Shown: piece after piece, positions 23,162-63,900 of the stretch
Layout: every line of letters begins with the position of its first letter
How positions within the stretch are numbered: the first letter of the stretch is position 1
IMG/VR virus record: IMGVR_UViG_3300042455_001086
Location: 186,001 to 250,000 of that record
Strand: one strand, 5' to 3'
Length of the DNA: 64,000 bases
Notes under the pieces: model-generated
Databases searched by the model: none
What the model saw: only the letters and a program-made list of their open reading frames with translations
What the model was told of the DNA's origin: nothing
Program-made: the position numbers and the translations under genes

Positions 23162-23848
23162 TCACATCATATCTTTTTCGTCTTGATCGTATTCTTCAAA
23201 AGAATCTTCAATCTCATTTGAAGAATATTGTTTAACATCGTCAACTGTTAATTCGTATTCTTTTCCGGTTTTTTCAAATTCTTGTTCTTTATCTGTAAAA
23301 AAATCAGACAACTTTTGATTAAATGGTCCTGAATCTAAAGTTCTCAATTCTAACTTTTCTTTATTTGTTTTAGGTCTCATTTTTTCAATTTTAGTTTCTA
23401 AACCATCAATCTTTGTGACCAATTGATCCATTTCTGATAATTTATCTTCTAATGATTTTAGTTGGCCAAATAATTGGTCAAAATATTCATCTTGTTTATC
23501 TTTAATTGAGTTCTGTGTATCAACAAGATCTGTTATTTCTAATTCTTCTTTTTCTGATTTTCCTTCATCATCTACAACTTCAACCTCATCATCAGCTTCA
23601 ACATCAACTGGAGCCGCTGGTGCTGGTGGTATCGTAGCCGCTGGGTCTGCTGGTGCTACTGCTGGATCTACTGGAGCTGCAGTTGGGTCTGCTGGTGCTG
23701 CCATAGGATCTACTGGGGCTGCCATAGGGTCTGCTGGTGGTGCTCCCGCTGCCGCCGGATCTGCCATAGGATCTTCTTGTTCAACAATATATTGATTGAT
23801 TTTTTTAAATCTTTTAATTTCTTCTAATATTTTAGTATCAATACCCAT
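23162..23848 (-). CDS. Acidic protein with Pro/Ala repeats and coiled coil (possible scaffold or internal head protein)
   Basis: DPxAAP(A/V) repeats, acidic coiled-coil C-terminal half, N-terminal KILEEIKR...IVE. Confidence 0.55.
   Translation of the reverse strand: MGIDTKILEEIKRFKKINQYIVEQEDPMADPAAAGAPPADPMAAPVDPMAAPADPTAAPVDPAVAPADPAATIPPAPAAPVDVEADDEVEVVDDEGKSEKEELEITDLVDTQNSIKDKQDEYFDQLFGQLKSLEDKLSEMDQLVTKIDGLETKIEKMRPKTNKEKLELRTLDSGPFNQKLSDFFTDKEQEFEKTGKEYELTVDDVKQYSSNEIEDSFEEYDQDEKDMM
23610..23775 (-). repeat. Imperfect 21-nt (7-aa) tandem repeat DP(M/T/A)AAP(A/V)
   Basis: ADPMAAPVDPMAAPADPTAAPVDPAVAPADPAA in the translation; locally GC-rich DNA. Confidence 0.8.
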
Positions 23849-36211: not shown

Positions 36212-36261
36212 ATCCTATTTTAAAATAAATACAAAAAAAATTGATTTTATAACTCAAAATA

Positions 36262-41449: not shown

Positions 41450-43066
41450 ATGGATTTACTTAAATTTTTTATAGAAAATAATAATAGTGGTGCAAAAACT
41501 AAAGAATCTTTTTTAAAAAAAAATTATCCAGAGTTATATTTTGAAATAATTAACTACAATAACAACGATTTAATTGATTTACCCTTTAAACAAAAAATAT
41601 GGCACTACATCAATAAAATCCAAAATATACCAAAATGTCAGAATTGTGGTAATAATTTGAAATTTAAAAAATCATTAACTGAAGGTTATGGTTTATATTG
41701 TTCCGTTTTATGTGCCAACAAATGTGGAATAAGAAAAACAAAAATCAAAGAAACAAATATTGTTAAATACGGTGGAAACGCACCAATTTGTTCTGATGAT
41801 GTTAAAAATAAAATAAAAGAAAGTTTTATTAGATCATTTGGTGTTGATAATGTTTTTAAAGATAAAGAATATATAAAATCAAAAACAATAGAAAAACACA
41901 ATGTTGATCATATATCAAAACTTGATTCAACCAAAGAAAAAATAAAAAACACAAACCAAACTAAATACGGTGTTTCAACTCCTTTAGTTTTACCAGAAAT
42001 TAGACAAGTTGGGTTTGATAAAAAAACTGAATGGTTTTATTCTAAATATGAAAATTTAAATGTTATTGGTTATACCGGAAAAACAATTGAAATAAAATGT
42101 GATAAATGTAATCAACCTTATTTAATTGAGAGGTCTTTGCTGTCTTATAGATTTGAAAATGACATAAACCCTTGTATTTTGTGTAATCCAATAAATGATT
42201 TAAAATCATTTAAAGAAAAACAAATCTGTGAATTTTTAGATGAACATAATATTAAATATGTTGAAAATGACCGCAATATTCTTAAAGGTCAAGAATTAGA
42301 TATTTTTATACCAGAACATAATATTGCCATTGAATTTGACGGTTTGTTTTGGCATTCAGATAAATTTAAAGACAAACAATATCATAGTTTAAAAACAAAT
42401 GAATGTAAAAAACTAGGTATTAGAGTGGTTCATATTTTTGAAGATGAATGGGATAATAAAAAAGAAATTGTAAAAAGTAGAATTAAAACATTATTAGGTC
42501 TTACTAGTGTTCGTGTTTTTGCTAGAAATTGTGAAGTAAAATATGTCGACACACAAACAAAAACAAAATTCTTGGAAGAAAACCATATCCAGGGCTCAGT
42601 TGGTAGTAAATTTAATTTAGGTTTATATTACAATTCAAATTTAATATCTATAATGACATTTGGTAAAAAAAGATTAAATCTTGGATATAAAAAAACAGAA
42701 AACAATGAATATGAATTACTTCGTTTTTGTAATAAACTAAACCACATTGTTGTTGGGGGTGCGTCTAAGCTACTTAAAAGGTTTATCGTTGATCAATCAC
42801 CAAAAGAAATTATAAGTTATGCTGATAAGAGGTGGAGTAATGGTAATTTATATGAGAAGTTGAACTTTTCTTTTGTAAAAGAAACAACACCGAATTATTA
42901 CTATGTCGTTAATAAAAAAAGAGAATCAAGATTCAAATACAGAAAAGATGTTTTGGTTGATTTGGGATATGATTCAAATAAAAGTGAATTTGAGATAATG
43001 GAAGAAAGAGGTATTCCAAAAATTTATGATTGTGGAAATCTATTATACAAAAAATCCCTAAAGTAA
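41450..43066 (+). CDS. Hef-like endonuclease with Mom-like GNAT domain (copy 2)
   Basis: Same architecture as copy 1: ELDIFIPEHNIAIEFDGLFWHS...HIFEDEW; VFARNC...FLEENHIQG...ELLRFC...GGASKLL...ISYAD...IYDCG. Confidence 0.75.
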   Translation: MDLLKFFIENNNSGAKTKESFLKKNYPELYFEIINYNNNDLIDLPFKQKIWHYINKIQNIPKCQNCGNNLKFKKSLTEGYGLYCSVLCANKCGIRKTKIKETNIVKYGGNAPICSDDVKNKIKESFIRSFGVDNVFKDKEYIKSKTIEKHNVDHISKLDSTKEKIKNTNQTKYGVSTPLVLPEIRQVGFDKKTEWFYSKYENLNVIGYTGKTIEIKCDKCNQPYLIERSLLSYRFENDINPCILCNPINDLKSFKEKQICEFLDEHNIKYVENDRNILKGQELDIFIPEHNIAIEFDGLFWHSDKFKDKQYHSLKTNECKKLGIRVVHIFEDEWDNKKEIVKSRIKTLLGLTSVRVFARNCEVKYVDTQTKTKFLEENHIQGSVGSKFNLGLYYNSNLISIMTFGKKRLNLGYKKTENNEYELLRFCNKLNHIVVGGASKLLKRFIVDQSPKEIISYADKRWSNGNLYEKLNFSFVKETTPNYYYVVNKKRESRFKYRKDVLVDLGYDSNKSEFEIMEERGIPKIYDCGNLLYKKSLK

Positions 43067-44033: not shown

Positions 44034-45557
44034 TTAATTTATTTTCAATTCAAATTTTAACGAACCACAATCCCATATCCTATCATATTTTTTTAATTTC
44101 ATAATTTCCCATTCTGTTAATTCTTTATTGTAACCTTCTTTGACTAAAACATCTTTCCTAAACGAAAATCTATGTGATCTATTTAAATATCTTTCTGTGT
44201 TTATATACCAATAATTTGGTGGTGTTTGTTTTACGAAATTAAAACCATTTTTAAAATACACAGTTTTTGTTTGATCTAAACCAGACCATCGAATATCAGC
44301 AAATGTTTCTATTTTAGATGGATTATATTTTTTAATGAAGTTCTTTAATAGTTTAGAAAATCCACCAATAATTGTTAAATTAATTTTATTACAAAATCTA
44401 ACTAACTCATATTCTGAATTATCCCTATTATCATTACCTAATGATTTTCTTTTTTTTCCAAATGTCATAACAGAAACTAATTCATCATTATAAAATAGAC
44501 CAAATCTAACCTTATCTATCGAATTTCCTTGTAAATGGTTATTTGTTAAAAACAATGAGGATTCTTTTTTTGGAATTTCTTTTATTTCACATTTTCTGGC
44601 GAAAATTTTATTACTCAATTCTAATTTATTTTTTAATTTTGACAACACAATATCTTTCTTTAATAAGATTTCATCTTCATAAAATTGAATGAGGGTGATT
44701 CCTTTATCATAACAAAGTTTTGTTTTATCAATATGATAATTTTTTGTTTTTTCACCACTTATTTCAGAATGGTAATAATTACCATTAACCTCAATTCCAA
44801 TATTATAATCCGGTAAATAAATATCTATTTCTCTACCATTTAGTATTTTTCTATCACCATCAATATGTTTAACACCTATACTATTTAGATAATCTTTAAT
44901 TATTTGTTCCAGTTTTGAATTTTTAATAATTGGGTAACACTTACGACATATCGGAATTTTACCAGAACCTAAAATTGTGCTACTAAAGATATTGTCACAT
45001 TTACAACATTTAAACATATAAGGTTGTGATGTTTTACCACTTTTATTAGCCACATATGTATCTAATATCTCAAGATTATTTTCATTTAATTTTGGTAGTA
45101 AATTTAATAAATGTTTATCTCTCAATGTTGATTTTAATTTGTCGACAAATTCCGGAACTAACATTGGGGATTTAACTCCGTATTTTTTCATAAAAATACT
45201 CTCATACGACTCTTTGAATTCTTTTGTTTTAAACAAACTATCAACCCCATATTTTTGACGGAGTGTGTTCTTCGATTTGCCTAACCGATATTCAATATGT
45301 TTAGGATTTGAGTTCCATAATATTCTACATTCTTCCGAACATATTTTTTTCTGATGTTTCTTCCTTTCTTCAAATTCTTTACCACATTGAACGCAAGTTC
45401 TTATTTCTCTAACATTAGAGTCTTTCGTCTTACCAAGTAATTTATTCTTTCTAGCGTAGTTAAAATAACAACTTCTATCACAAAATTTCTTATCTCTGTG
45501 TTTAAAATCAGTAATAAATGATTTATTACAAGATAAACATTCTAATTCAACTTTCAT
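44034..45557 (-). CDS. Hef-like endonuclease with Mom-like GNAT domain (copy 3)
   Basis: Two CxxC...FC/ICxxxC Zn modules, KYGV repeats, EIDIYLPDYNIGIEVNGNYYHS...QFYEDE, IFARKC...NHLQG...ELVRFC...IWDCG; likely start MKVELEC at 45557. Confidence 0.75.
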   Translation of the reverse strand: MKVELECLSCNKSFITDFKHRDKKFCDRSCYFNYARKNKLLGKTKDSNVREIRTCVQCGKEFEERKKHQKKICSEECRILWNSNPKHIEYRLGKSKNTLRQKYGVDSLFKTKEFKESYESIFMKKYGVKSPMLVPEFVDKLKSTLRDKHLLNLLPKLNENNLEILDTYVANKSGKTSQPYMFKCCKCDNIFSSTILGSGKIPICRKCYPIIKNSKLEQIIKDYLNSIGVKHIDGDRKILNGREIDIYLPDYNIGIEVNGNYYHSEISGEKTKNYHIDKTKLCYDKGITLIQFYEDEILLKKDIVLSKLKNKLELSNKIFARKCEIKEIPKKESSLFLTNNHLQGNSIDKVRFGLFYNDELVSVMTFGKKRKSLGNDNRDNSEYELVRFCNKINLTIIGGFSKLLKNFIKKYNPSKIETFADIRWSGLDQTKTVYFKNGFNFVKQTPPNYWYINTERYLNRSHRFSFRKDVLVKEGYNKELTEWEIMKLKKYDRIWDCGSLKFELKIN

Positions 45558-45626
45558 CGGTAAAATATATTTAATAGTTATGAGTATGTCTCTACAAATA
45601 AATATACGAAGATAATATAAAAAAAC

Positions 45627-45657
45627 AAAATCCCCCAAAAAAAATTTGAGGGATTTT
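45627..45657 (-). terminator. Terminator downstream of the sheath gene
   Basis: AAAATCCCTCAAA...TTTGGGGGATTTT stem on the minus strand followed by a T-rich run. Confidence 0.6.
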
Positions 45658-49034: not shown

Positions 49035-49154
49035 AGATTTTAAATTTTATGTTTTAATTTATTTTACTATAAATATTGTGTTTTTTAGCAAAAACTTTAC
49101 TTACATAAAACTATTTATATTTTGGTGAGAATTTTTTCTACCTTTTTTCTACCT

Positions 49155-50357: not shown

Positions 50358-50875
50358 TTATAATCCTCTAAATTCGTTAGGTCCAACTGGTGCGGCAATA
50401 ATAGTTCTATAAAATGGACGGTAACCTTTATATGTGTGTTTTATATCAGATGTAACACGACCATCATTCACAACCGTGTAGTATCGAACAAAACTTTCTG
50501 TATCATAATACCCAATATAATCTCCAAAATCGATATCAACATCTAAATCTTCGAGAGTTTTTAAATAAACAGACATTGTAATATTTCCAGGTTCAAGTTG
50601 GTCCATTTTGGTTGATCCCATAAATTTATTTTCAGGTGTCGCAATTCCAACATAAGCGTTAAATTCAACTGGAGGTAAAAATTTAATACCATCTGAAACT
50701 GTTTCACCATAAACATCATCGGTTTTGGTTTTGTTTTTATCGACACGATATAAAACACAGGTATAGTTCATATCACCGATTAACCATTCCATCCCAAGGC
50801 CCACCTCTAAAAAAAAAAATCTTCTTCTCCGAAGAACTTACCAAGCCTTGTTATGGGCACTCTATTATTTGACAT
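50358..50875 (-). CDS. Head closure/neck protein (gp14-like), frame broken by a T11 run
   Basis: ATG 50875 gives MSNNRVPITRLGKFFGEEDFFF*. The downstream frame LEVGLGMEWL...VLYRVD...DDVYGE...FLPPVE joins it only with T9 or T12. Confidence 0.6.
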
Positions 50876-51564
50876 ATAAGTTATGTTTTTTTACAAATTT
50901 AAATATAATTTTATTACTACATCCATAAATATTACCTATCTGAACATAGTTTAGTCCATTTATTAAATGGTTTTTTATTTCATCAACCACTAAATTATAA
51001 ATATTAGATTTTGGTTTATATATTTCATATTGTCTTAAATTTTTATTAATTGTGTTTATAGCACAATTAAATAAATTACTAATTTCTTTTATAGTTTTAT
51101 TTTTTATAATATGTGAACTACCCAACCACTAAAGATGGTTGGGCTTCAGGACTCGTAGACTCACCTAATGGTAACGCCTCCTCCTGTTTTTGTTTAATGT
51201 CCGATTCTATTCTATAACCAGACAATATGTTTATTCCTTGTTTCAGGATGTTTTTACCTAATATTGGATTTATATTACCACCATCAGCAAGGTTAAATAA
51301 ATCAAAATTTAATTGTCTATATTTTGAAATTTCGTCTATTTCAGCTTGTAATAAATCATCATATGATTTACATTCTTTTATTTGTCTAATTATTGGTCTT
51401 TTATTTTCATTTTTTAAATCATTAAACCAAGATGCGATAAATTGATTTGTTGGTGATTTTAAATGACCGTTTAATCTTCTTTGTAGTCCATTTTTTGTTA
51501 TACCAATATACTTTAATTCGTTAGTGTCTGGACAAAATAAACCATATAATTCAAACCTATTCAT
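50865..51564 (-). pseudogene. GIY-YIG homing endonuclease disrupted by an IS200/IS605 remnant
   Basis: N-terminal LYGL...KYIGIT...RRLNGH...AEIDEI...FNLADGG (GIY-YIG). The C-terminal tandem HTH-like part (KTIKEISNLFNC..., LNYVQIGNIYGCS...) is a separate ORF after the insertion. Confidence 0.75.
51113..51255 (-). mobile_element. tnpB: IS200/IS605 (IS1341-like) remnant: tnpB 3' end, omega-RNA-like scaffold and right end
   Basis: KNILKQGINILSG...EAQPSLVVG* resembles the TnpB tail after the NAAxNI motif. Subterminal hairpin CCCAACCA-TCTTTAG-TGGTTGGG is followed by TAGTTCAC. GC content is higher than the flanks. Confidence 0.75.
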
Positions 51565-51612
51565 TATTGATAAATATCATTTTATGATTATTTTTATTTA
51601 TATCTTGGAATT

Positions 51613-53373
51613 TTGGAAATACAAAAAAAACTGATAGAACATAAAGCCCTTGATTTATTGGACTCATATAGTGGGGCCAATAACCATATTCTATATATGA
51701 AGACCAAAAAAGAAACTAATAAAAAGTTTTATCCAACAAGAACTCAAGCCGAATATGTTGTAACTTATTTTGATACAAAACCAAAGGTTGCAAGAAAGTG
51801 GGTTGAACTGGATCCATACTTTGCAAAGAAGTTTGCACAAGAAAGATATTTGTTTGAAACGCCAGAAAAAGTCTATATTGAAAAGCTACTTGTTGAAAAA
51901 GATAAATCATATCATATCTGGGGTAAATTTTTTGAAAAAGACAGTTTGTCCGAATTTTGGGTGCCCAAGTCGTCCCTTATTAAATCACAAACGGTAGATG
52001 ATATTGTTATTGATTATTCTAAATACGAACATAGACCTCCACTATCACACCAGAAAGAAGCAATAGAAAAACTTACAAAATCTAGAAGATTTATTTTAGC
52101 TGATGACATGGGCGTCGGAAAGACATGTTCCACAATTATCGCAGCACTTGAGACCAACACAAAAAAAATTTTGGTAGTTTGTCCTGCGTCACTTAAAATA
52201 AATTGGCAACGAGAATTTAACATATATACCAATCGTAGTATTTTTATTGCTGAAGGAAAAAAATTCTCAACGGAACACGATATTGTAATTGTTAATTATG
52301 ATATTTTAAAGAACTTTTATGATATTAAAAACCCAAGTGATTCGCCAATTGGTCAAACTAACTTTGATTTAATCATATTGGATGAAGCTCATATGGTAAG
52401 TAATAGTCAAGCTGCTAGAACAAAAATAATTAATAGTTTTACAAAAAAAGCCAAATATTTGTGGTTATTAACGGGAACACCAATGACAAACAGACCAATC
52501 AACTATTATAATTTATTAAATTTGATTGAAAGTCCGGTTGCACAAAACTGGATGGCGTATGCTATTCGTTATTGTCAAGGATTTCAGTTTAGAGCTGGCA
52601 ATCGAAAAATATGGAATGTAACCGGAGCATCAAATCTGGAAGAATTAAGAGAAAGAACATCAAAACAAATTTTAAGAAGATTAAAAGAAGATGTTTTGGA
52701 TTTACCGGATAAGATTATTACACCCGTATATTTAAGAACATCATCAAAAGAATATAAAGATTTAATGGGTGAATATTATGAATGGTTAGAAAATAAAAAA
52801 GAAGAATCCTCTTCTCTTACCGTTCAGTTCTCAAAACTTATGAAAGTAAGAAAAGTAATTGCAAATGAAAAAGTAAAAGAAACAATTGAATTTGCTCAAA
52901 ATATTATAGACCAAGGAAAAAAAGTAATAATATTTACAAACTTCACAGATACACTTCAACTTATCCATAATCATTTTGGTAAAGAATCGGTATATCTTGA
53001 TGGTAGTTGTAATAAAGTCCAAAGACAATACGCTGTAGATCAATTCCAAGAAAATGAAAAAATTAAAGTGTTTGTTGGAAACTTAAAAGCCGCCGGTGTT
53101 GGACTTACATTAACTTCAGCCGAAGTTGTAATAATGAACGATTTATCATTTGTTCCCGCAGAACACGCACAAGCTGAAGATAGGGCATATCGTTACGGTC
53201 AAAAAAATAATGTATTAGTTTATTACCCAGTGTTTATTAATACAATTGAAGGTACGATATATGATATTCTAAATAAAAAGAAAAAAATTATCGGAACCGT
53301 AATGGGTGATGAGGTCCAAGATACTGGTGATGTTGTGGAAGAAATTTTGAATCTTATAAATAAAAGACCTTAA
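51613..53373 (+). CDS. SNF2-family (HARP/SMARCAL1-like) helicase
   Basis: LADDMGVGKT, VVCPASLKINW, ILDEAH, LTGTP, AAGVGLTLT, QAEDRAYRYGQ. Confidence 0.92.
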   Translation: MEIQKKLIEHKALDLLDSYSGANNHILYMKTKKETNKKFYPTRTQAEYVVTYFDTKPKVARKWVELDPYFAKKFAQERYLFETPEKVYIEKLLVEKDKSYHIWGKFFEKDSLSEFWVPKSSLIKSQTVDDIVIDYSKYEHRPPLSHQKEAIEKLTKSRRFILADDMGVGKTCSTIIAALETNTKKILVVCPASLKINWQREFNIYTNRSIFIAEGKKFSTEHDIVIVNYDILKNFYDIKNPSDSPIGQTNFDLIILDEAHMVSNSQAARTKIINSFTKKAKYLWLLTGTPMTNRPINYYNLLNLIESPVAQNWMAYAIRYCQGFQFRAGNRKIWNVTGASNLEELRERTSKQILRRLKEDVLDLPDKIITPVYLRTSSKEYKDLMGEYYEWLENKKEESSSLTVQFSKLMKVRKVIANEKVKETIEFAQNIIDQGKKVIIFTNFTDTLQLIHNHFGKESVYLDGSCNKVQRQYAVDQFQENEKIKVFVGNLKAAGVGLTLTSAEVVIMNDLSFVPAEHAQAEDRAYRYGQKNNVLVYYPVFINTIEGTIYDILNKKKKIIGTVMGDEVQDTGDVVEEILNLINKRP

Positions 53374-53404
53374 TTTCTTTTAAACTTATTGGTATTTATA
53401 AATA

Positions 53405-55504
53405 ATGAAACTTACTGTAAAACATATTGATTCTGGTCTTGACCCACAAGACAAGAAAATGTATAACGATTTTATTAAATTTATAAATTCAAAATATCCA
53501 GTCAATAAAGAACTCGAAATTTTATTTCTTGGTGAGAAAAATGGACATATGTCCACTGGGTCTCAAAATATGAACGGAGTTATTAAAGTCTTATCCAAAA
53601 ATAGATTGAACCGTGATATAATGAGAACTCTAGCACACGAATGGGTTCATGCGCATCAAAGATTTGTTTTAGGTAGAGAAAGAGGTCCGGACATTGGTGG
53701 TCAAAATGAAGATGAAGCAAATGCTTTCGCTGGACAATTAATTAAAATGTTTGAAAAAGAATATCCAGACTATAATGAACTTGTTTTTGAACATTCAAAA
53801 CCATTAATAAAAAAACTTGATCTTTTAAAAGAAGAAATTCTTAAAACAGAAAAACAAAATTTACATAAAGAATTTATTACTGAAATGAAAAAAATTGGTA
53901 TTGAAAAATTACCATATTCATATTCGGCTATGAAACAATTTGTTGATCCTAAAACAATGGACATTCATTACAACAAACATTATAAAGGTTATGTTAAAAA
54001 ATTAAACGCCGCATTATCAAACAAAAAAGGTGAAATGGAACTTGAGGATATTGTTAAGTCCATATCAAAATTTGACACAAAAGTAAGAAACAATGCTGGT
54101 GGGGCTTTTAACCATGCTTTATTTTGGAAAATGTTGTCACCAAAAAAACAAAAACCAAGCAAATCAATTTTAGAAAAAATTAAAAAAGATTTTGGAAATT
54201 TAAAAAAATTAAAAGATGAATTTAATTTAATTGCCAAAGATGGTTTTGGTTCTGGTTGGGCTTGGTTAATTCTTACAAAAAATAATAAATTAAAAATAAC
54301 TTTTACACCAAACCAAGATAATCCATTGATGGATGTTGTCAAAGGTGGTGGTTTTCCGTTACTAGGACTTGATCTTTGGGAACATGCTTATTATTTAAAA
54401 TATCAAAACAAAAGAGACGAATATATAAATAATTTTTGGAACTATATAAATTGGGATTTTGTTAATGATTTATATGAAACGAAATCAAAAAAGAAATTAA
54501 ACGAATCATTAAGAAAAATTATTGTTGAAAATGATACTATGGATTATGATTTAAAAAAGGCAATGAGTCGTGAATTACAAAAAATCAGACTTATACCCTT
54601 GGATGCCGAATCCGCATCAGAAGCAATTAAAAACATCATAACTGCCGAAACTTCAAGAGGTAATATTGATTTTAATAGAACACTTGAAGGTCTTATGTCG
54701 CTTAATTTGAGTAATGTATCAGAAAGATCAAAATATAGATTTAATAATTATTTTCAAAGATTTGTAAAAAGTAAGTCAAGAGGTCTTGATTTTGAAGGTA
54801 TGGTGGCCGGATTTTTAAATGGTGATCTAGCAACAAGTAATGTTTCACCATTCGATGTCTCAACACCAGCTGGTGATAAAATTTCTTGTAAAATCGTTAG
54901 AAGTCAAAAAGAACGAATAACACTTAAAAGTATTAAAGAAACATTGGGTCAATATTTAGCCAACTATTCTGGTTCTGAAGAAAACAAACAAGAATTGTTA
55001 AAGATGAGCCAACAACCAAATTTTCTTAGATTATTGGTAAATCACGAAAATCAAGATTTGAAAAATCAAGCCGAAGATATATTGGAATTTTTACTTACAG
55101 ACATCACCGGGTTGTTGGTTGGTATCCCAAATGAAACAAAAGTTGGAATTGATTTATATTATTATGATAAAAATAAAATTATTGATCTTGTTAAAACACC
55201 TGGGTTATTAAATGCCGGAAGATCACCAGAAGCACAAACAATATCATTATCAACAAAAATACTTAGTGGTGATAAAACTATGTCTGGATTTATTCAGTTT
55301 CCAGTTTTAACAATGGATGATTATCAATCTTTTTTAATTGGTGATGAAAAAACAAAAGAAGTTTTAAATTTATTTAATCAACTTGGAAACAAATACGGTG
55401 TTCCAAGACTTGGAGACAATTTACCACAAGACATTATTATAGGTTTATCTAAAAATGAAAGATTCAAGTTAGATCTTAAAAAATTGGTAAATCCAATAAG
55501 GTAA
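53405..55504 (+). CDS. Fusion protein: zincin HExxH domain + Fe/Mn superoxide dismutase + putative PD-(D/E)XK nuclease
   Basis: RTLAHEWVH...EDEANA; LPYSY...IHYNKH...NHALFW...FGSGWAWL...NQDNP...GLDLWEHAYY; RGLDFEGMVAGFLNG...PFDV...KISCK. Confidence 0.8.
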   Translation: MKLTVKHIDSGLDPQDKKMYNDFIKFINSKYPVNKELEILFLGEKNGHMSTGSQNMNGVIKVLSKNRLNRDIMRTLAHEWVHAHQRFVLGRERGPDIGGQNEDEANAFAGQLIKMFEKEYPDYNELVFEHSKPLIKKLDLLKEEILKTEKQNLHKEFITEMKKIGIEKLPYSYSAMKQFVDPKTMDIHYNKHYKGYVKKLNAALSNKKGEMELEDIVKSISKFDTKVRNNAGGAFNHALFWKMLSPKKQKPSKSILEKIKKDFGNLKKLKDEFNLIAKDGFGSGWAWLILTKNNKLKITFTPNQDNPLMDVVKGGGFPLLGLDLWEHAYYLKYQNKRDEYINNFWNYINWDFVNDLYETKSKKKLNESLRKIIVENDTMDYDLKKAMSRELQKIRLIPLDAESASEAIKNIITAETSRGNIDFNRTLEGLMSLNLSNVSERSKYRFNNYFQRFVKSKSRGLDFEGMVAGFLNGDLATSNVSPFDVSTPAGDKISCKIVRSQKERITLKSIKETLGQYLANYSGSEENKQELLKMSQQPNFLRLLVNHENQDLKNQAEDILEFLLTDITGLLVGIPNETKVGIDLYYYDKNKIIDLVKTPGLLNAGRSPEAQTISLSTKILSGDKTMSGFIQFPVLTMDDYQSFLIGDEKTKEVLNLFNQLGNKYGVPRLGDNLPQDIIIGLSKNERFKLDLKKLVNPIR

Positions 55505-55524
55505 TATTTATATAAAAAAGAACT

Positions 55525-56649
55525 ATGGCAATTATATCTGAACCAGGAAGGAGCGACCTTTATAAAAAAGTAAGACATTTACTTGGTGCCCCTTTAAGAA
55601 GTGTTGAATTGGAAGACGAACAAATGGATACTCTTCTTGAATTTTCAATTGACGAATATTCACAATATGTTCAAGATTGGTTAATTGAATCTCAATGGTC
55701 AGCATTAAATAATTTAAACCTTGATACACAATCTTTATCCAGAGCTTTCACAACAAGAAGTTTGGATTATGAAACAAGATATACTTACGCATACTCAAAA
55801 ATTGTTGGTCTTCAAGCCGGCGGTGATTGGGTATTGAAAAAAGATTATATTCAGTTGGTTAAAGGACAACAAATTTATGAAATTCCGGCAAATAGAGAAT
55901 TAAATGAGATGTTGTGGTTCACGCCACCAGAAATGAATAACTTACTTTTTGATCCTTGGGCATTTGGTGGTATTGCTGGTGGTGGTATTTCAGGACCAGC
56001 AGGTTATGCTCAAGTTGGTAATTTATCTGGTAGTTACTTTTTAATGCCAGCATTTGATATGTTATTGAGAATGCAAGAAATAAATATTCAAAAAAGAATT
56101 ATCGCTGGTGAATTAACATATAGAGTAACAGCATTACCAGATGGTAAGAAAGCGGTTCATTTGATGAACACACCAGGTGGTAAATTTGACTTCGGTAATT
56201 CAACATTAATGAAAGGAAAAGTTTGGTATTGGTATTATGATGTTGGTCCGGAAGATAGAGATAAATGTTTAAAGGATAATCCAGATATTATCAAATTACC
56301 ATCTGATGTTCCATTTGACAAAATGAGTTGGCACGACTTAAACAATCCGGCACAAATCTGGGTTAGAAGGTGGTTTATAGCATATTGCAAAGAAACACTT
56401 TCAAAGGTTCGTGGTAAATTTAGTGGTAATTTAAAAACACCAGATGGTGATTTACAACTGGAATGGCAAACACTAGCGACAGAAGCTAAAGATGAAAAGA
56501 CAAAATTGATAGATGAATTAATTGGTGCTGAAGGTCGATTAACTAGGTTAAAACCAGAAAAAGTAATAGAAAGAGACGCATTAATTGCCGAAAACTTAAA
56601 TAAATCCCTAAAATTTAGGGCGATGCCAAGACAAATATATGTGATATGA
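55525..56649 (+). CDS. Neck / head-tail adaptor protein (T4 gp13-like)
   Basis: LLGAPLRSVELEDEQM N-terminus and WVRRWFIAYCKETLSKVRGKFSG...PDG C-terminus. Confidence 0.8.
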   Translation: MAIISEPGRSDLYKKVRHLLGAPLRSVELEDEQMDTLLEFSIDEYSQYVQDWLIESQWSALNNLNLDTQSLSRAFTTRSLDYETRYTYAYSKIVGLQAGGDWVLKKDYIQLVKGQQIYEIPANRELNEMLWFTPPEMNNLLFDPWAFGGIAGGGISGPAGYAQVGNLSGSYFLMPAFDMLLRMQEINIQKRIIAGELTYRVTALPDGKKAVHLMNTPGGKFDFGNSTLMKGKVWYWYYDVGPEDRDKCLKDNPDIIKLPSDVPFDKMSWHDLNNPAQIWVRRWFIAYCKETLSKVRGKFSGNLKTPDGDLQLEWQTLATEAKDEKTKLIDELIGAEGRLTRLKPEKVIERDALIAENLNKSLKFRAMPRQIYVI

Positions 56650-57017
56650 TAAAGGTTGAAAATTTAACACCCAGAAAAAATGTTGTTAGATACCAAACAC
56701 AAACAGTTGTTGAACCGAAAGTGGTCATTGAAACCCCAAAGGAGGTTTGTAAAGTAATTTCTGAAACACAATATGTAACAAATGATGAAACTTTTTTAAT
56801 TGTAAAAGAAGTTGATTATTCTGAAGTTACTTTAAATTCTAATATATCTACAAAAATTACAATAAAATCATTAACAAGTGTTTTAGTTAAATCAGATGTT
56901 GGTTCTATTGACGAAGAATGGGATGAACTCCTTTTAGAAAAAGGAGCTTGTGTTCAATTCCAATTTGTTGAGGGTAACTGGTATGTTAAAGCAAGTGATG
57001 GTCTAAAGATGGGTTAG
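56646..57017 (+). CDS. Hypothetical protein (123 aa), probably structural
   Basis: ATGA overlap with the neck gene; beta-rich, ends GNWYV. Confidence 0.6.
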
Positions 57018-57175
57018 ATTATCTTTGATCCTTTACTCAAATTTTCTTTAGCCCATAGTGGTTGTAGATTTGTGTAATGACAAAGCTTGTAAATTTCTTC
57101 TTCGTTTTTTGCCGATGATAGTGGTATTATGTGGTCAATATGCCAACCATAAAATCCATAATTATCCCAAAACAT
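57014..57175 (-). pseudogene. C-terminal fragment of an HNH endonuclease (53 aa)
   Basis: [53 protein letters not shown]; not in the ORF track. Confidence 0.8.
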
Positions 57176-57308
57176 ACTCTCTAACTAATCTTTCAATTAA
57201 TGTTGAGACCTTGTGACCGTCATCTTTTATTTTTTGATAAAGTTTAGGATCTAAACTTATACCAAATTTTATTTTTTTATCTTCTTGGTTAATTTTTGGT
57301 CTCCCCAT
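57162..57308 (-). CDS. 48-aa ribbon-helix-helix-like protein
   Basis: [48 protein letters not shown]; TATTTAT motif 3 nt upstream. Confidence 0.6.
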
Positions 57309-57355
57309 AATATAAATATCTGTCAGTTTATTAAAGTTTCACTTTTATTAAAAAA

Positions 57356-60148
57356 TTATGAAATAAATTTTTGCATATATGGATCAACATTATCATACAT
57401 ATGATATGGTGAAATGCCAACTTTTTCCCAGAATACAACCTCATCATCCGACATTTCCATAACATCCTCTAATTTATCCTGATCTTTTTCATCAAAAGGA
57501 ACACCATTTATTAACTCACATTGGTCTTTAGTAAAAAATGGTCTATCTTCCGGATTTTTAACCAATAAACCATTTCTAACTTCCTCTTTAAAACAAACAA
57601 GTAATGGTTCCACTCTTTTATTAAATGTCGCAATTGCTCTTTGGATATTATAATCACCAGTAAGTCCTGGGTTACTTTCTAATTCTTTGGGGTCAATTCT
57701 ATAACAATTAAGTTGTATAACTGATCCCACTATATCTGGATTAACTTTTGAATTTGAGAAAAAAGTTTTTAGTTGTTCTTCATTCCACCCTTTCTTTGGT
57801 TGATTTACTTTCTGAACATCTCCGTGTGATGCTTTTGTTCCGTTATTCACATAATAAATTACATCACCAAGACTAACATTAAGGCCTTCTTTAATTACAA
57901 GTTCCATATGTGCTTGTCTTGACATTTCAGCCCCAGCTTTTGTTTTGGTTTTACTTCTTTTGATGTAATCATCAATGGTTTGTTTAATCTTTGCCTTGTT
58001 TGCAATATCCATCAAAGGAATCTTTTGGTCAAATATTTTTTGTAGATATTCGTAATACCATTCAACAAACCCTTGTCCATCACCATTAAGTAAAAGTTTA
58101 ATTCCTTTGTCCAAAAACAATTCAATATATTTTGGCATCTTTTTAGATTTAATCGAATTTCCCGTAAGTTTAACCTTACCTTTATCCGTTAATAAAGCAT
58201 AGTTCTTACGAGCAAGGTTTATACACGCTGGCCAACAGCCGTCTATATCTAAGCCCATCTTTCCACGCATACACATATCATTAAATTCCGCAACATCAGC
58301 GTCAGCACCAAGATATTCTTTACCTTCCTTTACCAACCAGTTAAGACCTTTACCAATATATTTTTTGTTTTCCATTCCTTCTGGTGTTATAAAATTAATA
58401 CCATCAGTATCTAAAATTGTTATTTGATACCCCCTTTCAGTAAAAAAATGAATCATCATTCTTAAATATTGTCTTCCAGTGGTAGTAATCATTTCACCCT
58501 TGTCCATATCACCCCAAGGAAATACTTGTGGTGCTGACAAAGCACCAAAAAGTGAATTGATAAATATTTTTACGGGTAATTGGAAATTATCATATTTTTG
58601 TGAAATTTTCTTATCTTTTGTTTTCCACTCGGCGGATAGATTCTTATACATAATACGAGTATCCCTAAAATAAGATAATAAACCTTTCATTACACCAGTT
58701 ATATCCGATTCTGGGAATACATCGTGTGTTAATTGTATTGATGGATATAGTGATGAGTAGTCAAGTTTTAATACATCCTTTGAGTATCCAGTTTTAAGTA
58801 ATCTTGACAATCCACCAACAAAGTTTCTTTTTTCTTTTTTTGCTGGAATTGCAAGACCATTCTTATACGACCAGGCAAGCATTACAAGTTTCCAGATTGT
58901 GGCGGTTCCCATCGTTGAAACCCTCTCATATGTTGTTGGAAGAAGTGATGCAAGAAGAAAAGATCCTTGGTTGAACTCTTCATCAACAAGTAAAGTTTCT
59001 TCCAAGTCATCGTCCAAGTAACGCTCCACAATATCATCACCGGTTGTTTGAATATAAATGTCAGTTCTTCTTGAACATACCTCATCTATTTTTTCATCAA
59101 TACCAACTTTCTTATATTTTCCGTTTTCAATGTTTAACCAGTATAGGTTTTTTTCCTTGTATAAAGAACCAATCTTGTCGTGGTCAATATACACACGATC
59201 ACTAGCTTCAGCATCAATAAATTTTGTGATGTATTTAAGTCCGGCTTCTTTGATTGAGGAATTAATTGCTTGAGCTCTACGAACTGAATGTATGATGTCA
59301 ATAATGTTATAACCCCACATTTGAGTTTGGGTAAAACTCTCAACTTCGTTTCCTAATTTTAATATTGATTCTTTTTGTGTGATTGATCTTTCACCGTGAA
59401 GTGACTTTGCAACTTTCTTTATATCAAGATTTAAAATCTTACATCTTTCATAAATCCAGTACCAGTCAAAGTTTGCTGAGTTATACCCAGAAATAATTGA
59501 TGGTTTTATTTCATCTATAATTTTAAAGAACTCAACAATACCTTTTCTTTCTTCGTCATCAGTTGAACACTCAATTACTTTACTATAACCCTTATTTGTT
59601 TTAATCCCAATCATAAAGATTCTCCCATCTCTAGGTTCTAGAGATGTGGTCTCAAGGTCAAATACAAGTCGCGTGATGTCGTTGTAGTCTTCAAATCCTT
59701 TGAATAATCTCTTTTCTTTTGAGACTAAGAATTGTTCTGTTGGTGTAAGCATTAAGAATTTATCTCTTACCTTTTCACCCCATGGATCAATTCCACCATC
59801 TCTAAAAAATTGTGTAAGTGCTCTATATCCTTTTAAAGATTTAACAAGGAATGTTAAACCGTTTTCTAATTGTTCATTTCCGTCTGTTCTTAATTTTTCT
59901 ATAATAATACCATACTTGGTCATCGCTTCTTTTTGTAAAGCCTTTGATCCTTGGTAAAAGTTTAACCCTCTTAAATCACCAACCCAAGCAAATGCAATTA
60001 AGCTATCTCTTACAATTGATTTTCCTTTTCCCGGTATTTCTTTGATTTTATAAATGTGGTCTTTTTGATAATCAAACTCTATTGCCACAATGTGTTCTTC
60101 TGGGTCGTTTCCTTCTAGAAACGATTTAATTTCTTCTGCTGTAATCAT
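57356..60148 (-). CDS. Family B DNA polymerase with 3'-5' exonuclease
   Basis: Exo FDLETT, GYNSANFDW, YLDDD; pol LDYSSLYPS, KIFINSLFG, LDTDG, RKNYA. Confidence 0.95.
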   Translation of the reverse strand: MITAEEIKSFLEGNDPEEHIVAIEFDYQKDHIYKIKEIPGKGKSIVRDSLIAFAWVGDLRGLNFYQGSKALQKEAMTKYGIIIEKLRTDGNEQLENGLTFLVKSLKGYRALTQFFRDGGIDPWGEKVRDKFLMLTPTEQFLVSKEKRLFKGFEDYNDITRLVFDLETTSLEPRDGRIFMIGIKTNKGYSKVIECSTDDEERKGIVEFFKIIDEIKPSIISGYNSANFDWYWIYERCKILNLDIKKVAKSLHGERSITQKESILKLGNEVESFTQTQMWGYNIIDIIHSVRRAQAINSSIKEAGLKYITKFIDAEASDRVYIDHDKIGSLYKEKNLYWLNIENGKYKKVGIDEKIDEVCSRRTDIYIQTTGDDIVERYLDDDLEETLLVDEEFNQGSFLLASLLPTTYERVSTMGTATIWKLVMLAWSYKNGLAIPAKKEKRNFVGGLSRLLKTGYSKDVLKLDYSSLYPSIQLTHDVFPESDITGVMKGLLSYFRDTRIMYKNLSAEWKTKDKKISQKYDNFQLPVKIFINSLFGALSAPQVFPWGDMDKGEMITTTGRQYLRMMIHFFTERGYQITILDTDGINFITPEGMENKKYIGKGLNWLVKEGKEYLGADADVAEFNDMCMRGKMGLDIDGCWPACINLARKNYALLTDKGKVKLTGNSIKSKKMPKYIELFLDKGIKLLLNGDGQGFVEWYYEYLQKIFDQKIPLMDIANKAKIKQTIDDYIKRSKTKTKAGAEMSRQAHMELVIKEGLNVSLGDVIYYVNNGTKASHGDVQKVNQPKKGWNEEQLKTFFSNSKVNPDIVGSVIQLNCYRIDPKELESNPGLTGDYNIQRAIATFNKRVEPLLVCFKEEVRNGLLVKNPEDRPFFTKDQCELINGVPFDEKDQDKLEDVMEMSDDEVVFWEKVGISPYHMYDNVDPYMQKFIS

Positions 60149-60257: not shown

Positions 60258-61838
60258 TTATGAATGTGTTATAATCCAGTTATATGGGGATCCGGTTAAA
60301 AAATTTCTTGCGGCAATTCCATCGTAACCACCTGAACTAGCATCTGGTGCGCCGTTTGTTCCCCCTATTTTTAAATTAATATTTGACCATCCGGTCGGAT
60401 TGTAAGTAGCGTTTCCACTAAAATCGACCAAAATGTGGTTTACATCAGAAGATGACATATTATTATCATATAATCCAATAATAGGTCTCCCTTGTGTTGC
60501 CCCTGATATTAATGTGGCTCCTGATAATGGTTTAAAATCAACATAATCTAAATTACAGTCAAACATTCTAAAAGCCGAGAACGAATCGTTATTACTAGTA
60601 TTTCTAAAAAAAGTATTGACGTTAGGAAAAATAACATTAGTTAAATTATCATTACCGCTAACTTGGATATACCCTGTCGAAGCGGAGCTTGACCCACCTA
60701 ATTTTGTTAAATTTGTTAAATTCAAATTTCCGGTTAGGTTACAATTATTAGCCAAATAAGACGTAAAATTTTGTGATGATTGTGTATGCGTTATATTTGT
60801 TAAACCGGTATTATTATATATCGAAAAATTACCACCCAAACCTGATAATGGTGTTAAATCTAAATTTCCTGTTAAATTACAAGAATGCACAGAATAATTA
60901 CTAAAATTTTGTGATGATTGTGTATGTGTAATACCAGTTAAATTGGAATTAGAATGAGCTTGAAAATTACCACCCAATCCTGATAATGGTGTTAAATCTA
61001 AATTTCCTGTTAAATTACAAGAATACACAGAATAAGACGTAAAATTTCGTGATGATTGTGTATGTGTAATACCAGTTAAATTGGGATTACTATAAGATCT
61101 AAAATCACCACCCAAACCTGATAATGGCGTTAAATCTAAATTTCCTGTTAGGTTACAATTATTAGCCCAATATCTTGTAAAATTTTGTGATGATGGTGAA
61201 TGTGTAATACCAGTTAAGTTTAAGTTATTATTAACATAAAATTCACCTCCCAAACCAGATAATGGTGTTAAATCTAAATTTCCTGTTAAATTACAAGAAT
61301 ACACAGAATAAGACGTAAAATTTCGTGATGATTGTGTATGTGTAATACCAGTTAAATTGGAATTATTCTGAGTTTGAAAATCGCCACCCAAACCTGATAA
61401 TGGTGTTAAATCTAAATTTCCTGTTAAATTACAAGAATACACAGAATAAGTACTAAAATTTTGTGATGATGATGAATGTGTTATTCCTGTCAATCTTGGG
61501 TTATTTGAAACAATAAAAACCCCACCCAAACCTAATAATGGTGTTAAATCTAATTTACCATATATGTTATCATTAAATAAATTAAATCCATTAATGTTAC
61601 TAAAACTATTACCTCTCATTTGAATGGTTCTAATTTCTGTGTCAGCAGAAAACCCACTATATGTGATTGAATTTCCGGCTGTTTGTGTAATATTTGTCCC
61701 ATTATTAAGTTTCCAAGAAACCCTTCTTGAACCACTACTAAATGTAACATCCGGATCAAATGATGTTGTTGACCCACTTTTTTGAAATGTCAGTACTTGA
61801 CCTATATTATTTCTTGATGTAAATTGTTGCCTACTCAT
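60258..61838 (-). CDS. LRR-like tandem repeat protein (526 aa), putative receptor-binding/surface protein
   Basis: 46-aa repeats CNLTGNLDLTPLSGLGGxFxxxxNxNLTGITH; C-terminal cap VNHILVD...W; follows a fibre-like gene. Confidence 0.7.
   Translation of the reverse strand: MSRQQFTSRNNIGQVLTFQKSGSTTSFDPDVTFSSGSRRVSWKLNNGTNITQTAGNSITYSGFSADTEIRTIQMRGNSFSNINGFNLFNDNIYGKLDLTPLLGLGGVFIVSNNPRLTGITHSSSSQNFSTYSVYSCNLTGNLDLTPLSGLGGDFQTQNNSNLTGITHTQSSRNFTSYSVYSCNLTGNLDLTPLSGLGGEFYVNNNLNLTGITHSPSSQNFTRYWANNCNLTGNLDLTPLSGLGGDFRSYSNPNLTGITHTQSSRNFTSYSVYSCNLTGNLDLTPLSGLGGNFQAHSNSNLTGITHTQSSQNFSNYSVHSCNLTGNLDLTPLSGLGGNFSIYNNTGLTNITHTQSSQNFTSYLANNCNLTGNLNLTNLTKLGGSSSASTGYIQVSGNDNLTNVIFPNVNTFFRNTSNNDSFSAFRMFDCNLDYVDFKPLSGATLISGATQGRPIIGLYDNNMSSSDVNHILVDFSGNATYNPTGWSNINLKIGGTNGAPDASSGGYDGIAARNFLTGSPYNWIITHS
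60700..61565 (-). repeat. 138-nt tandem repeat, about 6 copies
   Basis: CCTGATAATGGTGTTAAATCTAAATTTCC-like anchor at 60841, 60979, 61117, 61255, 61393 and 61531 (period 138). Confidence 0.92.
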
Positions 61839-62747: not shown

Positions 62748-62772
62748 AATTTTTTTTTATAAATACTTGTTT

Positions 62773-63900
62773 TTATGAAGATATTTCTGTCGCAAAGCAA
62801 ATTTCTCCTTTTTCTCTAATTAATCTTTCCATATCATTGAAGGAAATATAAGCTGTGCCATTTATACCCCAACTTCTACCCCAACTATTTTTCATTCTAA
62901 ATATTCTTTTTCTTGTGTCAACACCATTTATCACATAGGCATGACCTCCAAGTAAAGGACCACCAATTCTTATATTTCCATTTCTATCTGGAAAGAACAT
63001 ATTTCTATACCAATTTGTCCCAACCACTACCGGTCCAATATTTAAAACAGAATCAATTAATGTTTGAAGTGTATAACCCCAATAATAATTTCTTACCTTA
63101 CCTACTTGTTGTAGATATTTTACACCACCCCTTACCGAAGTTCCATTATAGTTTTCACCTGGCCATTCATCAAGTTTTTGAGCGTTTTCATAAATTATTT
63201 TAGGTTGAATGATTGGCGCAACACCTGGTTGTCCAATTGGACCGTCTTCCAACCAATGAGCCCAAGAAAAACCAACACAATGCGGTGTATTTCCTTGATT
63301 TCCCCACCATCCATTATCATCCCAATATCTTGATGTTATTGTCACCCTTGATCTTGATGAGGTTAAAAGGTGGTTTTCAATTAAATAATTATTATCCCGT
63401 TCATCTGGCTTATGTGTTCTACCAAGTGGAAATTCTGTTTCGACAACTGTTGTTGTTGCTGTTACTGGAATAACTGGTGTTGAAACACAACAAGGAAATT
63501 CTGAAACATAACAACTTTCATATGGTAAATCATCACCTATAAAACTTTCTTGGATATTAATATATAATTTTTCTCTTATCGGTAAAATTAAAACACCCTC
63601 GTTCTCGGTTCTAAATAAAAACTGACCTTCAAATCTCCCAACCTTATTTGTGTCTTTTGACTGGAATTGGTAATAAACATAATACTCAACCGGAGCATTT
63701 GGATCCGTAAATTCTTTTTTTGTGAAACCAGCCGGCCTTGTCACTATTTTTGGAATTCCGGTTTCAACATCTGACATTGAAAAGAATATTGCTGATTCCT
63801 CAATGAAATTCATAAAACTATTGTAGTCACTTCTACCGTCTTTTACCACTTGAATTTTTAACAATGGTAATGTTGCGTTCTTTTTAATATAAAATTCCAT
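62773..63900 (-). CDS. BppU-like Ig domain fused to a papain-like (C1) cysteine peptidase
   Basis: N-terminal FYIKKNATLPLLK...YQFQSKDTNKVGRFEGQF; catalytic motifs QGNTPHCVGFSW, GGHAYVING, KNSWG. Confidence 0.8.
   Translation of the reverse strand: MEFYIKKNATLPLLKIQVVKDGRSDYNSFMNFIEESAIFFSMSDVETGIPKIVTRPAGFTKKEFTDPNAPVEYYVYYQFQSKDTNKVGRFEGQFLFRTENEGVLILPIREKLYINIQESFIGDDLPYESCYVSEFPCCVSTPVIPVTATTTVVETEFPLGRTHKPDERDNNYLIENHLLTSSRSRVTITSRYWDDNGWWGNQGNTPHCVGFSWAHWLEDGPIGQPGVAPIIQPKIIYENAQKLDEWPGENYNGTSVRGGVKYLQQVGKVRNYYWGYTLQTLIDSVLNIGPVVVGTNWYRNMFFPDRNGNIRIGGPLLGGHAYVINGVDTRKRIFRMKNSWGRSWGINGTAYISFNDMERLIREKGEICFATEISS

Follow-up and report, generated by a model that had tools for sequence, protein, structure and literature searches.

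A multi-enzyme phage fusion protein built on a superoxide dismutase core with exchangeable flanking modules

The window analysed here is a stretch of 64,000 nucleotides (nt) from the IMG/VR virus record IMGVR_UViG_3300042455_001086 (positions 186,001-250,000), and our subject is one gene within it, which encodes a fusion of a zincin, a Mn-type superoxide dismutase (SOD) and a nuclease-like domain (Table 1). A first-pass annotation of this DNA had described a single open reading frame (ORF) of 699 amino acids (aa) joining an HExxH domain, a complete SOD and a further domain of ~320 aa. The ORF is indeed intact and consists of three confidently folding modules, and both linker strings quoted in that annotation occur verbatim in its translation. 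The same annotation had considered that the junctions could be assembly artefacts, which is contradicted by the homologs that we recovered from independent metagenomes. Searching 5.8 billion proteins, we found more than 100 protein clusters of ~699 aa with all three parts, at 57-95% identity and free of frame disruptions; their sources are ENA, JGI, NCBI and Logan assemblies, with contigs of up to 188 kb. Moreover, at least three independently assembled contigs carry a 699-aa SOD-domain gene at the same position, together with a neighbor protein identical to that of the window. Since the same architecture recurs on independently assembled contigs and in more than 100 clusters, the module junctions are real. 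In 90 homologs, each module keeps its predicted catalytic residues without exception, and all three enzyme modules are under purifying selection. An assembly or gene-calling artefact, or a decaying gene with an inactive SOD, is extremely improbable given the four independent data sources, the length of the contigs (to 280 kb for a second arrangement of the modules, described below), the unbroken frames and the invariance of all SOD ligands and second-shell residues. We are highly confident of the three-module anatomy, namely a zincin, a Mn-type SOD and a domain with a PD-(D/E)XK fold. No zincin-SOD-nuclease fusion was present among the 50,697 phage records searched, the literature searched held nothing specific on a phage SOD fusion or on this phage lineage, and the only public annotation label of the homologs is "Fe-Mn family superoxide dismutase". 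The modular fusion is both real and undescribed.

Table 1. The fusion gene, its parts and the co-oriented genes around it, in window coordinates
Feature	Position	Strand	Details
Zincin-SOD-nuclease-like fusion, 699 aa	53405..55504	+	ATG start, no internal stops, stop codon 55502-55504
N module, aa 1-129, IrrE/ImmA-like minimal zincin	53405..53791	+	HEWVH aa 78-82 (53636-53650); EDEANA aa 102-107 (53708-53725)
Linker 1, aa 130-160, helix with (L/I)xE	53792..53884	+	P1 Glu 143, 149, 160; pLDDT 51-77
SOD module, aa 161-367, Mn-type Fe/Mn superoxide dismutase	53885..54505	+	Metal ligands H188, H237, D323, H327
Linker 2, aa 360-377, KKKLNE / IIVE	54482..54535	+	(L/I)xE at P1 367 and 375; motif conservation
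C module, aa 378-699 (start approximate), phage-specific PD-(D/E)XK (restriction-endonuclease) fold	54536..55501	+	R-G-x-x-F-E464...D484...S494-x-K496 at 54788-54892
Promoter-like TATTTAT (53393-53399) overlapping TATAAATA (53397-53404)	53393..53404	+	Directly 5' of the ATG
SNF2-family helicase gene, upstream, co-oriented	51613..53373	+	Synteny in all relatives
T4 gp13-like neck (head-completion) gene, downstream, co-oriented	55525..56649	+	phrog_211 (head-tail adaptor PHROG); orthologs are PF26809 Phage_T4_gp13
Small ORF of 123 aa, fourth in the plus-strand cluster	56646..57017	+	Syntenic in relatives

The most conserved part of the fusion protein is the SOD module. It matches both halves of the family, Sod_Fe_N (PF00081, aa 166-245, E = 3.6e-20, 72.6 bits with a cut-off of 27) and Sod_Fe_C (PF02777, aa 251-355, E = 5.8e-38, 129.5 bits with a cut-off of 20.9). 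A search of the PDB with this module matched 160 SOD sequences, the best being the Sphingobacterium MnSOD 5a9g (E = 1.2e-64), and the top matches are Mn or cambialistic SODs. Mn-type SODs are discriminated by a Gly-Gly pair and by a Gln (NQD) in the C-terminal domain. The four metal ligands and the Mn-type residues pointed out in the first-pass annotation are borne out by the alignment: the ligands are invariant in 90 of 90 homologs, and so are G232 and Q304 (NQD). The same holds for the gateway residues H192 and Y196 (90/90) and for W325, E326 and Y330, of which E326 and Y330 are dimer-interface residues. Ligands and gateway residues alike can be aligned to those of 5a9g. The SOD domains of the homologs are 64-92% identical to that of the window, and the closest cellular SODs are overwhelmingly from Bacteroidota, with 46-55% identity to the module. 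Together, these two observations indicate that the SOD is an old capture from Bacteroidota that has been maintained in the phage lineage. A Por_Secre_tail domain (of the type IX secretion system, T9SS) is encoded by related jumbo phages, and this, along with the Bacteroidota-nearest SODs, makes a Bacteroidota host likely.

The HExxH domain that had been noticed at the N terminus is a minimal zincin. Its signature consists of HExxH (here HEWVH), 19 residues and then EDEANAFA (aa 102-109), a pattern resembling HExxH...E-x-x-A-N-x-F-A, which we take to be the signature of ImmA/IrrE. H78, E79, H82, E102 and D103 are invariant in the 90 homologs, and E104 and N106 are kept in 89 of them. The AlphaFold2 (AF2) model of the module has a predicted local distance difference test (pLDDT) score of 86. 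When this model was compared by Foldseek with the BFVD, the best match was a 127-aa protein of an uncultured phage (E = 5e-13, template modeling (TM) score 0.72/0.90), and "IrrE N-terminal-like" proteins were matched with E-values of 6e-6 and 1e-5 (probability 1.0), SprT-like ones more weakly. Against the PDB only weak zincin matches were obtained (M61, PprI/IrrE, YbeY, aureolysin; best E = 0.04, with PprI 8sln at E = 0.16). ESM Atlas clusters with partial PF06114 annotation match the module at a score of 0.95. At the sequence level, PF06114 (Peptidase_M78) gave no match to the module at E up to 1, none of the 120 stand-alone zincin relatives listed carries a precomputed Pfam annotation, a profile search against PDB sequences returned chance-level matches only, and PHROGs yielded one weak match to a family of unknown function. 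Because PF06114 does not match, we call the module IrrE/ImmA-like, as its motif and modeled fold suggest, and not a member of the Peptidase_M78 family. It shares with ImmA/IrrE proteins the HExxH, the spacing of ~20 residues, the E-x-E-A-N-x-F-A and a similarity in fold to the "IrrE N-terminal-like" proteins of phages and, at a weak level, to PprI. It differs from them in its small size (129 aa) and in lacking a sensor domain and a nearby cognate repressor; no Xre-type helix-turn-helix (HTH) gene is found among the annotated neighbors in the window and in related loci.

Stand-alone relatives of this zincin are abundant in other phages of 195-320 kb. They measure ~129 aa, are 50-63% identical to the module, and their C terminus coincides with residue 129 of the fusion. 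The zincin fold also heads other phage multi-enzyme proteins, in which it is joined to NT5C, cytidylyltransferase-like, NTP_transf_2, amidoligase or AAA domains. On two contigs of such 195-320-kb phages (L020:7237-8872 and L021:7108-8937), the stand-alone 129-aa gene lies between lysozyme-like genes (SLT, or GH19 and SLT), with genes for thymidylate synthase, a ClpP-like protease, FKBP, a homolog of the anti-Thoeris protein Tad3 and a Por_Secre_tail protein nearby, which hints at a cell-wall-related or accessory role of the free zincin and at Bacteroidota hosts. The homolog of cyanophage B23 is located in a region of small ORFs and tRNA genes. We also looked for a split operon form, with a zincin gene beside a SOD gene, and found none, the stand-alone genes lying between the lysozyme-like genes just mentioned.

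For the last domain, the first-pass annotation had pointed to a FEG...PFD...SCK pattern resembling a nuclease. The pattern is present, and E464, D484, S494 and K496 are invariant in the 90 homologs. The AF2 model of the C module (pLDDT 88) was matched by Foldseek to PDB restriction-endonuclease folds, the top eight being NhoI and Eco15I-N, then PvuII, MvaI and Hjc, with probabilities of up to 0.99, an E-value of only 0.04 and a TM score of 0.5 by target length. In the ESM Atlas the module is nearest to unnamed viral clusters, and the closest named families are HinP1I, SmaI, PvuII and DpnI. We found no Pfam or PHROG match to the C module, and its profile search against PDB sequences gave chance-level matches only. 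The nuclease assignment holds as to fold and fails as to a sequence match with a curated nuclease family. We regard the module as a domain of PD-(D/E)XK fold, probably an active nuclease, with a putative catalytic constellation. Its best structural matches are endonucleases of the PvuII/NhoI/Eco15I type, and its E...D...(S/E)xK lies on the expected elements; compared with these enzymes, the C module is twice as large, with extra helical parts, has Ser in place of the acidic residue in most members, has no match at the Pfam or PDB sequence level and is not adjoined by a partner methyltransferase. At the S-x-K position, 41 of 48 members of the C-domain family have Ser, and three distant members have Glu, the classical E-x-K. 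Ser variants at the catalytic acidic position occur in some restriction enzymes, which makes activity plausible. A profile search with the C domain among 1.84 billion representatives retrieved 81 clusters, mainly stand-alone proteins of 300-350 aa, with the family signature R-G-x-x-(F/W)-E-G...D...S-x-K. Members are also fused to polyphosphate kinase 2 (PPK2; P0238) and to a DUF4314/SH3-like domain (P0194), or lie inside longer unannotated proteins of 660 and 1372 aa (P0197, P0208). Judging by these sequences, the C-domain family is a mobile module whose range extends beyond the SOD fusions.

The survey of homologs that the first-pass annotation had called for revealed an exchange of modules around the SOD, in the form of three architectures and four combinations of N and C module types. 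The majority form, architecture A, is the zincin-SOD-C of the window. In architecture B, the zincin and the SOD are followed by Y, an unrelated module of ~350 aa without identifiable relatives, or, in one variant, by another module, X. Architecture C has no zincin and begins with a leader of 21-23 aa, followed by SOD-X-C, for a total of 850-872 aa; it occurs on contigs of up to 280 kb. Within architecture A, the types of N and C module occur in all four combinations (55/21/17/2), and the divergences of the two modules are barely correlated (r = 0.25), so that recombination between modules evidently occurs. We considered X as a possible paralog of the C domain and rejected this (hhalign probability 1.8%). 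Module X has no PDB match and one stand-alone relative, itself unannotated; the Atlas scores for Y (≤0.57) are uninformative.

The modules are joined by two short, helical linkers. The helix of linker 1 is missing in stand-alone zincins and is homologous to the N-terminal leader of architecture C, where the zincin is absent and the linker sequence persists as the first 21-23 residues, ending in (I/L)x(S/T)E. Six [LI]xE motifs are conserved in at least 50% of 90 full-length homologs, and five of them fall in the linkers (P1 143, 149, 160, 367 and 375), the sixth being the DLWEH of the SOD active site. Across four divergent genomes representing all three architectures, (L/I)xE is conserved only at 143, 160 and 367, all in linkers, and the P1 glutamates 149 and 375 are conserved within architecture A. 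In six control proteins of the same genomes, similarly conserved motifs occur at a rate of 0.0062 per aa, so that three or more in 41 linker residues have P ~0.002, a suggestive value. An L-x-E follows the SOD regardless of whether the next module is C, X or Y. Cytoplasmic SODs of Bacteroidota start 7 residues before LPY and end 28-33 residues after D.WEHAYY, for a total length of 200-203 aa. In the fusion, the E160|M161 junction lies 8 residues ahead of LPY and LNE367 lies 37 residues past D.WEHAYY; cuts at E160 and E367 would give a SOD of native size, 207 aa. Conserved (L/I)xE motifs at the module junctions, bracketing a native-size SOD, are thus confirmed. Met161, just after the invariant Glu160, is kept in the inspected homologs of architectures A and B and is mostly Ala in those of architecture C. 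Its codon (53885-53887), which is not preceded by TATTTAT, the element discussed below, may be left over from the start of the SOD gene that was captured, or may serve for internal initiation. A peptide resembling the linkers was not found elsewhere in the proteome of the window.

The order SNF2 helicase, fusion, gp13 and small ORF is common to all architectures, and the family matches of the downstream gene agree with the neck gene that had been reported beside the fusion. The TATTTAT reported ahead of the fusion gene is likewise present, 12 nt upstream of its ATG. On the coding strand, TATTTAT occurs within 45 nt (6-41 nt) upstream of 15 of 37 gene starts, where ~0.7 are expected from its density and an opposite-strand control gives 7; overall it is not enriched in the window (53 occurrences versus 53.6 expected). 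It often appears as (A/G)TATTTAT, and examples besides that of the fusion are at 55505-55511, 51595-51601, 49069-49075, 36225-36231 and 62759-62765. Genes for the sheath, gp13 and wedge proteins are preceded by it, as are those for DnaB, SNF2 and homing endonucleases. We consider it probably a promoter-like element of the phage's own, with very short leaders. A scan of 50800-57500 for sigma-70 promoters and intrinsic terminators gave nothing above shuffled controls.

We suggest, tentatively and at somewhat less than an even chance, that the fusion is a precursor cut after the glutamates of its linkers, and that a prohead protease is the likeliest enzyme to do so. We prefer a processed precursor because the anatomy of the linkers can be set against known Glu-specific proteases and packaged-cargo precursors. 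The prohead proteases of T4 and of giant phages all cleave after Glu (PMC5694885). The capsid-targeting peptides of T4 are 10-20 residues long, roughly the length of the architecture C leader, and giant-phage ejection proteins have propeptides of ~125 residues that contain several sites (PMC5694885). T4 heads can accommodate a foreign nuclease when it is fused to a targeting peptide (PMC3012670), and the virion of PBCV-1 packages a late-expressed SOD (PMC7019647). Consistent with a precursor are also the joining of three functionally unrelated enzymes, the existence of both flanking modules as free-standing phage proteins, the free recombination of N and C module types, and the position of the gene, directly upstream of the neck gene with a start-associated element of its own and no terminator between the two. 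If this hypothesis is true, then cutting after the (L/I)xE glutamates would set free the 207-aa SOD, with the zincin and the nuclease each becoming a protein of its own. The best candidate for the cutter would be a Glu-specific prohead protease of the T4/giant-phage type; taking this as the enzyme would place the precursor in the prohead, from which its products would pass into the cell along with the DNA. Once inside, the delivered SOD could quench superoxide early in infection and the nuclease could attack unmodified host DNA, the phage's own DNA being perhaps protected by the products of its Mom-like, methyltransferase and sugar-modification genes. We infer that cleavage takes place, which protease performs it, that the products are packaged and delivered, and what they do in the cell. 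In its full form, in which the protein is an exchangeable-module cargo precursor, loaded into the prohead and cut by the prohead protease under the direction of its leader helix and Glu-P1 linkers, so that the virion delivers a Mn-SOD, a nuclease and a metalloprotease, the proposal is on the unlikely side. The injected cargo polyprotein of the first-pass annotation is plausible and unproven.

Several observations weigh against processing and packaging. Neither the 64-kb window nor ~30 kb of flanks yielded a gene for a prohead protease, major capsid protein or portal, with profile libraries that are nearly blind in this lineage. PHROGs and Pfam were applied to almost every window ORF of at least 90 aa apart from three giant ones, and the search walked ~10 kb past the right edge and ~20 kb past the left edge without reaching the head module; all that it brought up were unannotated ORFs and genes for the tail, the baseplate, replication and glycans. 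The lineage has no cultured relative, the DNA polymerase of the nearest isolate being only ~23% identical to that of the window. The first 30 residues of the window protein contain no (L/I)xE, and thus no targeting peptide of the T4 N-terminal type. The motif statistic of P ~0.002 is modest, and the linker windows were picked post hoc, after the data had been seen. The overall (L/I)xE density of the fusion is average for the proteome (1.4 versus 1.1 per 100 aa), and structural constraints on an amphipathic or coiled-coil linker could by themselves keep L/I and E conserved. The SNF2 helicase gene that precedes the fusion in the same cluster is non-structural. TATTTAT had to be rejected as a late-gene marker and assigns no late class to the fusion, since it also lies upstream of replication and homing-endonuclease genes. 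Finally, the stand-alone relatives of the zincin lie in accessory, non-structural neighborhoods, and the stand-alone C-domain genes examined are near DHFR or sugar-modifying genes, that is, in accessory or metabolic and non-structural surroundings.

Alternatively, the protein may never be cleaved and may act in the cytoplasm as a multifunctional enzyme, with the obligately dimeric SOD serving both as antioxidant and as dimerization scaffold for two restriction-enzyme-like nuclease domains, the zincin being an accessory protease or a regulatory domain and the conserved linker residues structural. We regard this as the main rival, a real possibility that ranks only slightly below the preferred reading. 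It would agree with the invariance of all three active sites in the fused state and with the retention of E326 and Y330 at the SOD dimer interface. The best fold matches of the C domain are of the PvuII type, and PvuII-type enzymes act as dimers. The non-structural settings of the stand-alone relatives of both flanking modules, the clustering with the SNF2 helicase gene, the want of an N-terminal targeting peptide in the window protein and the occurrence of the same zincin fold ahead of metabolic enzymes in other phages (NT5C, cytidylyltransferase-like, NTP_transf_2) all point the same way. An uncleaved enzyme leaves unexplained, however, why the sole conserved features of the linkers are (L/I)xE motifs bracketing a native-size SOD, why proteins that lack the zincin keep the linker as an N-terminal leader, and why the unrelated modules C, X and Y are exchanged at exactly these points. 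A third possibility is a polyprotein that processes itself, its own zincin, or, in relatives without that domain, a stand-alone paralog acting in trans, cutting the linkers and releasing the SOD and the nuclease in the cytoplasm without any capsid. The HExxH...E active site is intact and invariant, the fold resembles that of the site-specific endopeptidases of the IrrE/ImmA type, the cleavage-like motifs start ~14 residues past the end of the zincin, and the same zincin heads other multi-enzyme phage proteins. Self-processing is nonetheless improbable: ImmA and IrrE are not known to cleave after Glu, architecture C retains both the leader and the post-SOD L-x-E with no zincin in the protein, and stand-alone zincins occur in phages without a nearby SOD gene. 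A precursor cut by a Glu-specific prohead protease is the reading that we tentatively prefer.

Phage SODs, virion-packaged viral SODs, Glu-specific capsid maturation and cargo targeting are all already known, and the fusion can be compared with each. Stand-alone phage Fe/Mn SODs, such as those of the Pseudomonas jumbo phage PA5oct and its relatives, of Vibrio phage 2.275.O and of a freshwater metagenomic "Bacteriophage sp.", are of the same enzyme family and likewise occur in large phages, but they are matched or annotated over the SOD only (~170-200 aa) and are 29-41% identical to the SOD of the fusion. To our knowledge, every phage SOD known so far is encoded by an ordinary accessory gene with a single domain. 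Here, the SOD is instead the fixed core of a widely conserved multi-enzyme protein, with flanking modules swapped at conserved cleavage-like linkers. A245R of the chlorovirus PBCV-1, a virus SOD that is delivered in the particle and lowers superoxide early in infection (PMC7019647), exemplifies the function that the first-pass annotation proposed for the fusion. A245R, however, is a late-expressed, single-domain protein of the unrelated Cu/Zn family from a virus of eukaryotes, and its packaging has been shown, whereas that of the fusion is a proposal. In the internal proteins and Alt of T4, a capsid-targeting sequence is removed by the gp21 prohead protease, which cuts after Glu, and the cargoes are diverse and exchangeable (PMC3012670, PMC5694885). 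The ejection proteins of the giant phages SPN3US and phiKZ have long propeptides, often with several cleavage motifs, and are likewise cut after Glu (PMC5694885). The likeness to the T4 proteins lies in the architecture C leader of 21-23 aa, which ends in (I/L)xE. The fusion nevertheless has no sequence homology to either group, and the leader of the window protein is not terminal: a folded zincin with intact catalytic residues precedes it.

Should the linkers prove to be processing sites, the fusion would show a giant phage bundling unrelated enzymes behind one signal and would represent a new class of delivered effectors, directed against oxidative stress and host DNA. Were delivery by the virion true, the SOD would be the first phage-injected antioxidant enzyme, and the protein a natural effector cassette of the plug-and-play type, with C, X, Y and the zincin swapped at cleavage linkers. 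If the protein stays intact, it would be an unusual SOD dimer that serves as a nuclease scaffold. Under either reading, it defines two unannotated phage protein families that are hidden by the SOD-only public annotation. One is a minimal, IrrE-like zincin (~129 aa); the other, of ~320 aa, is PD-(D/E)XK-like and carries the signature R-G-x-x-F-E-G...D...S-x-K.

The phage belongs to an uncultured lineage of jumbo myophages (at least 257 kb) with T4-type neck and baseplate genes; further proteins of the window are matched exactly on a 257-kb contig. The window has a GC content of ~30% and no tRNA genes, and includes giant ORFs of 1683-2241 aa. Its structural genes encode the sheath, the tail tube, a baseplate hub, wedge proteins and the gp13-like neck protein, and its genes for replication and nucleotide metabolism a family-B DNA polymerase, DnaB, a UvsX-like protein, SSB and ribonucleotide reductase. 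There are three homing-endonuclease-like genes. Among these mobile elements, two paralogous HNH homing-endonuclease-like ORFs of ~530 aa (39231-40814 and 44034-45638, both on the minus strand; phrog_3339, E < 1e-112) flank the tail tube and Mom-like genes, and a GIY-YIG endonuclease gene (51118-51564, minus strand) lies directly ahead of the SNF2-SOD-gp13 cluster. Mobile endonucleases may contribute to local mosaicism.

The window encodes a DNA methyltransferase and a Mom-like modification protein. The large methyltransferase gene is at 19008-21092 (minus strand), and the product of an ORF at 41450-43066 (plus strand) is itself a fusion, combining DUF7487, REase_MTES_1575 and a Mom-like domain. 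A block of sugar genes (L013:5759-9970) comprises an N-acetylglucosamine (GlcNAc) transferase, Methyltransf_21, UDP-galactopyranose mutase and a glycosyltransferase. From this gene content, the DNA or the virion of the phage is probably heavily modified, a relevant point if the C domain acts as a nuclease and phage DNA has to escape it. An unannotated ORF of 228 aa (23162-23848, minus strand), without a family match, has three (L/I)xE motifs in its first 23 residues; it could be a processed or scaffold-like protein, or the motifs could be due to chance. A 375-aa ORF (62773-63900, minus strand), ~7 kb from the fusion, belongs to a PHROG "peptidase" family (E = 3e-57) and has a weak match to Peptidase_C1 (papain family); its product is a cysteine protease. 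Lastly, a 526-aa ORF at 60258-61838 (minus strand) has a short match to the N-terminal region of BAAT/acyl-CoA thioesterases.

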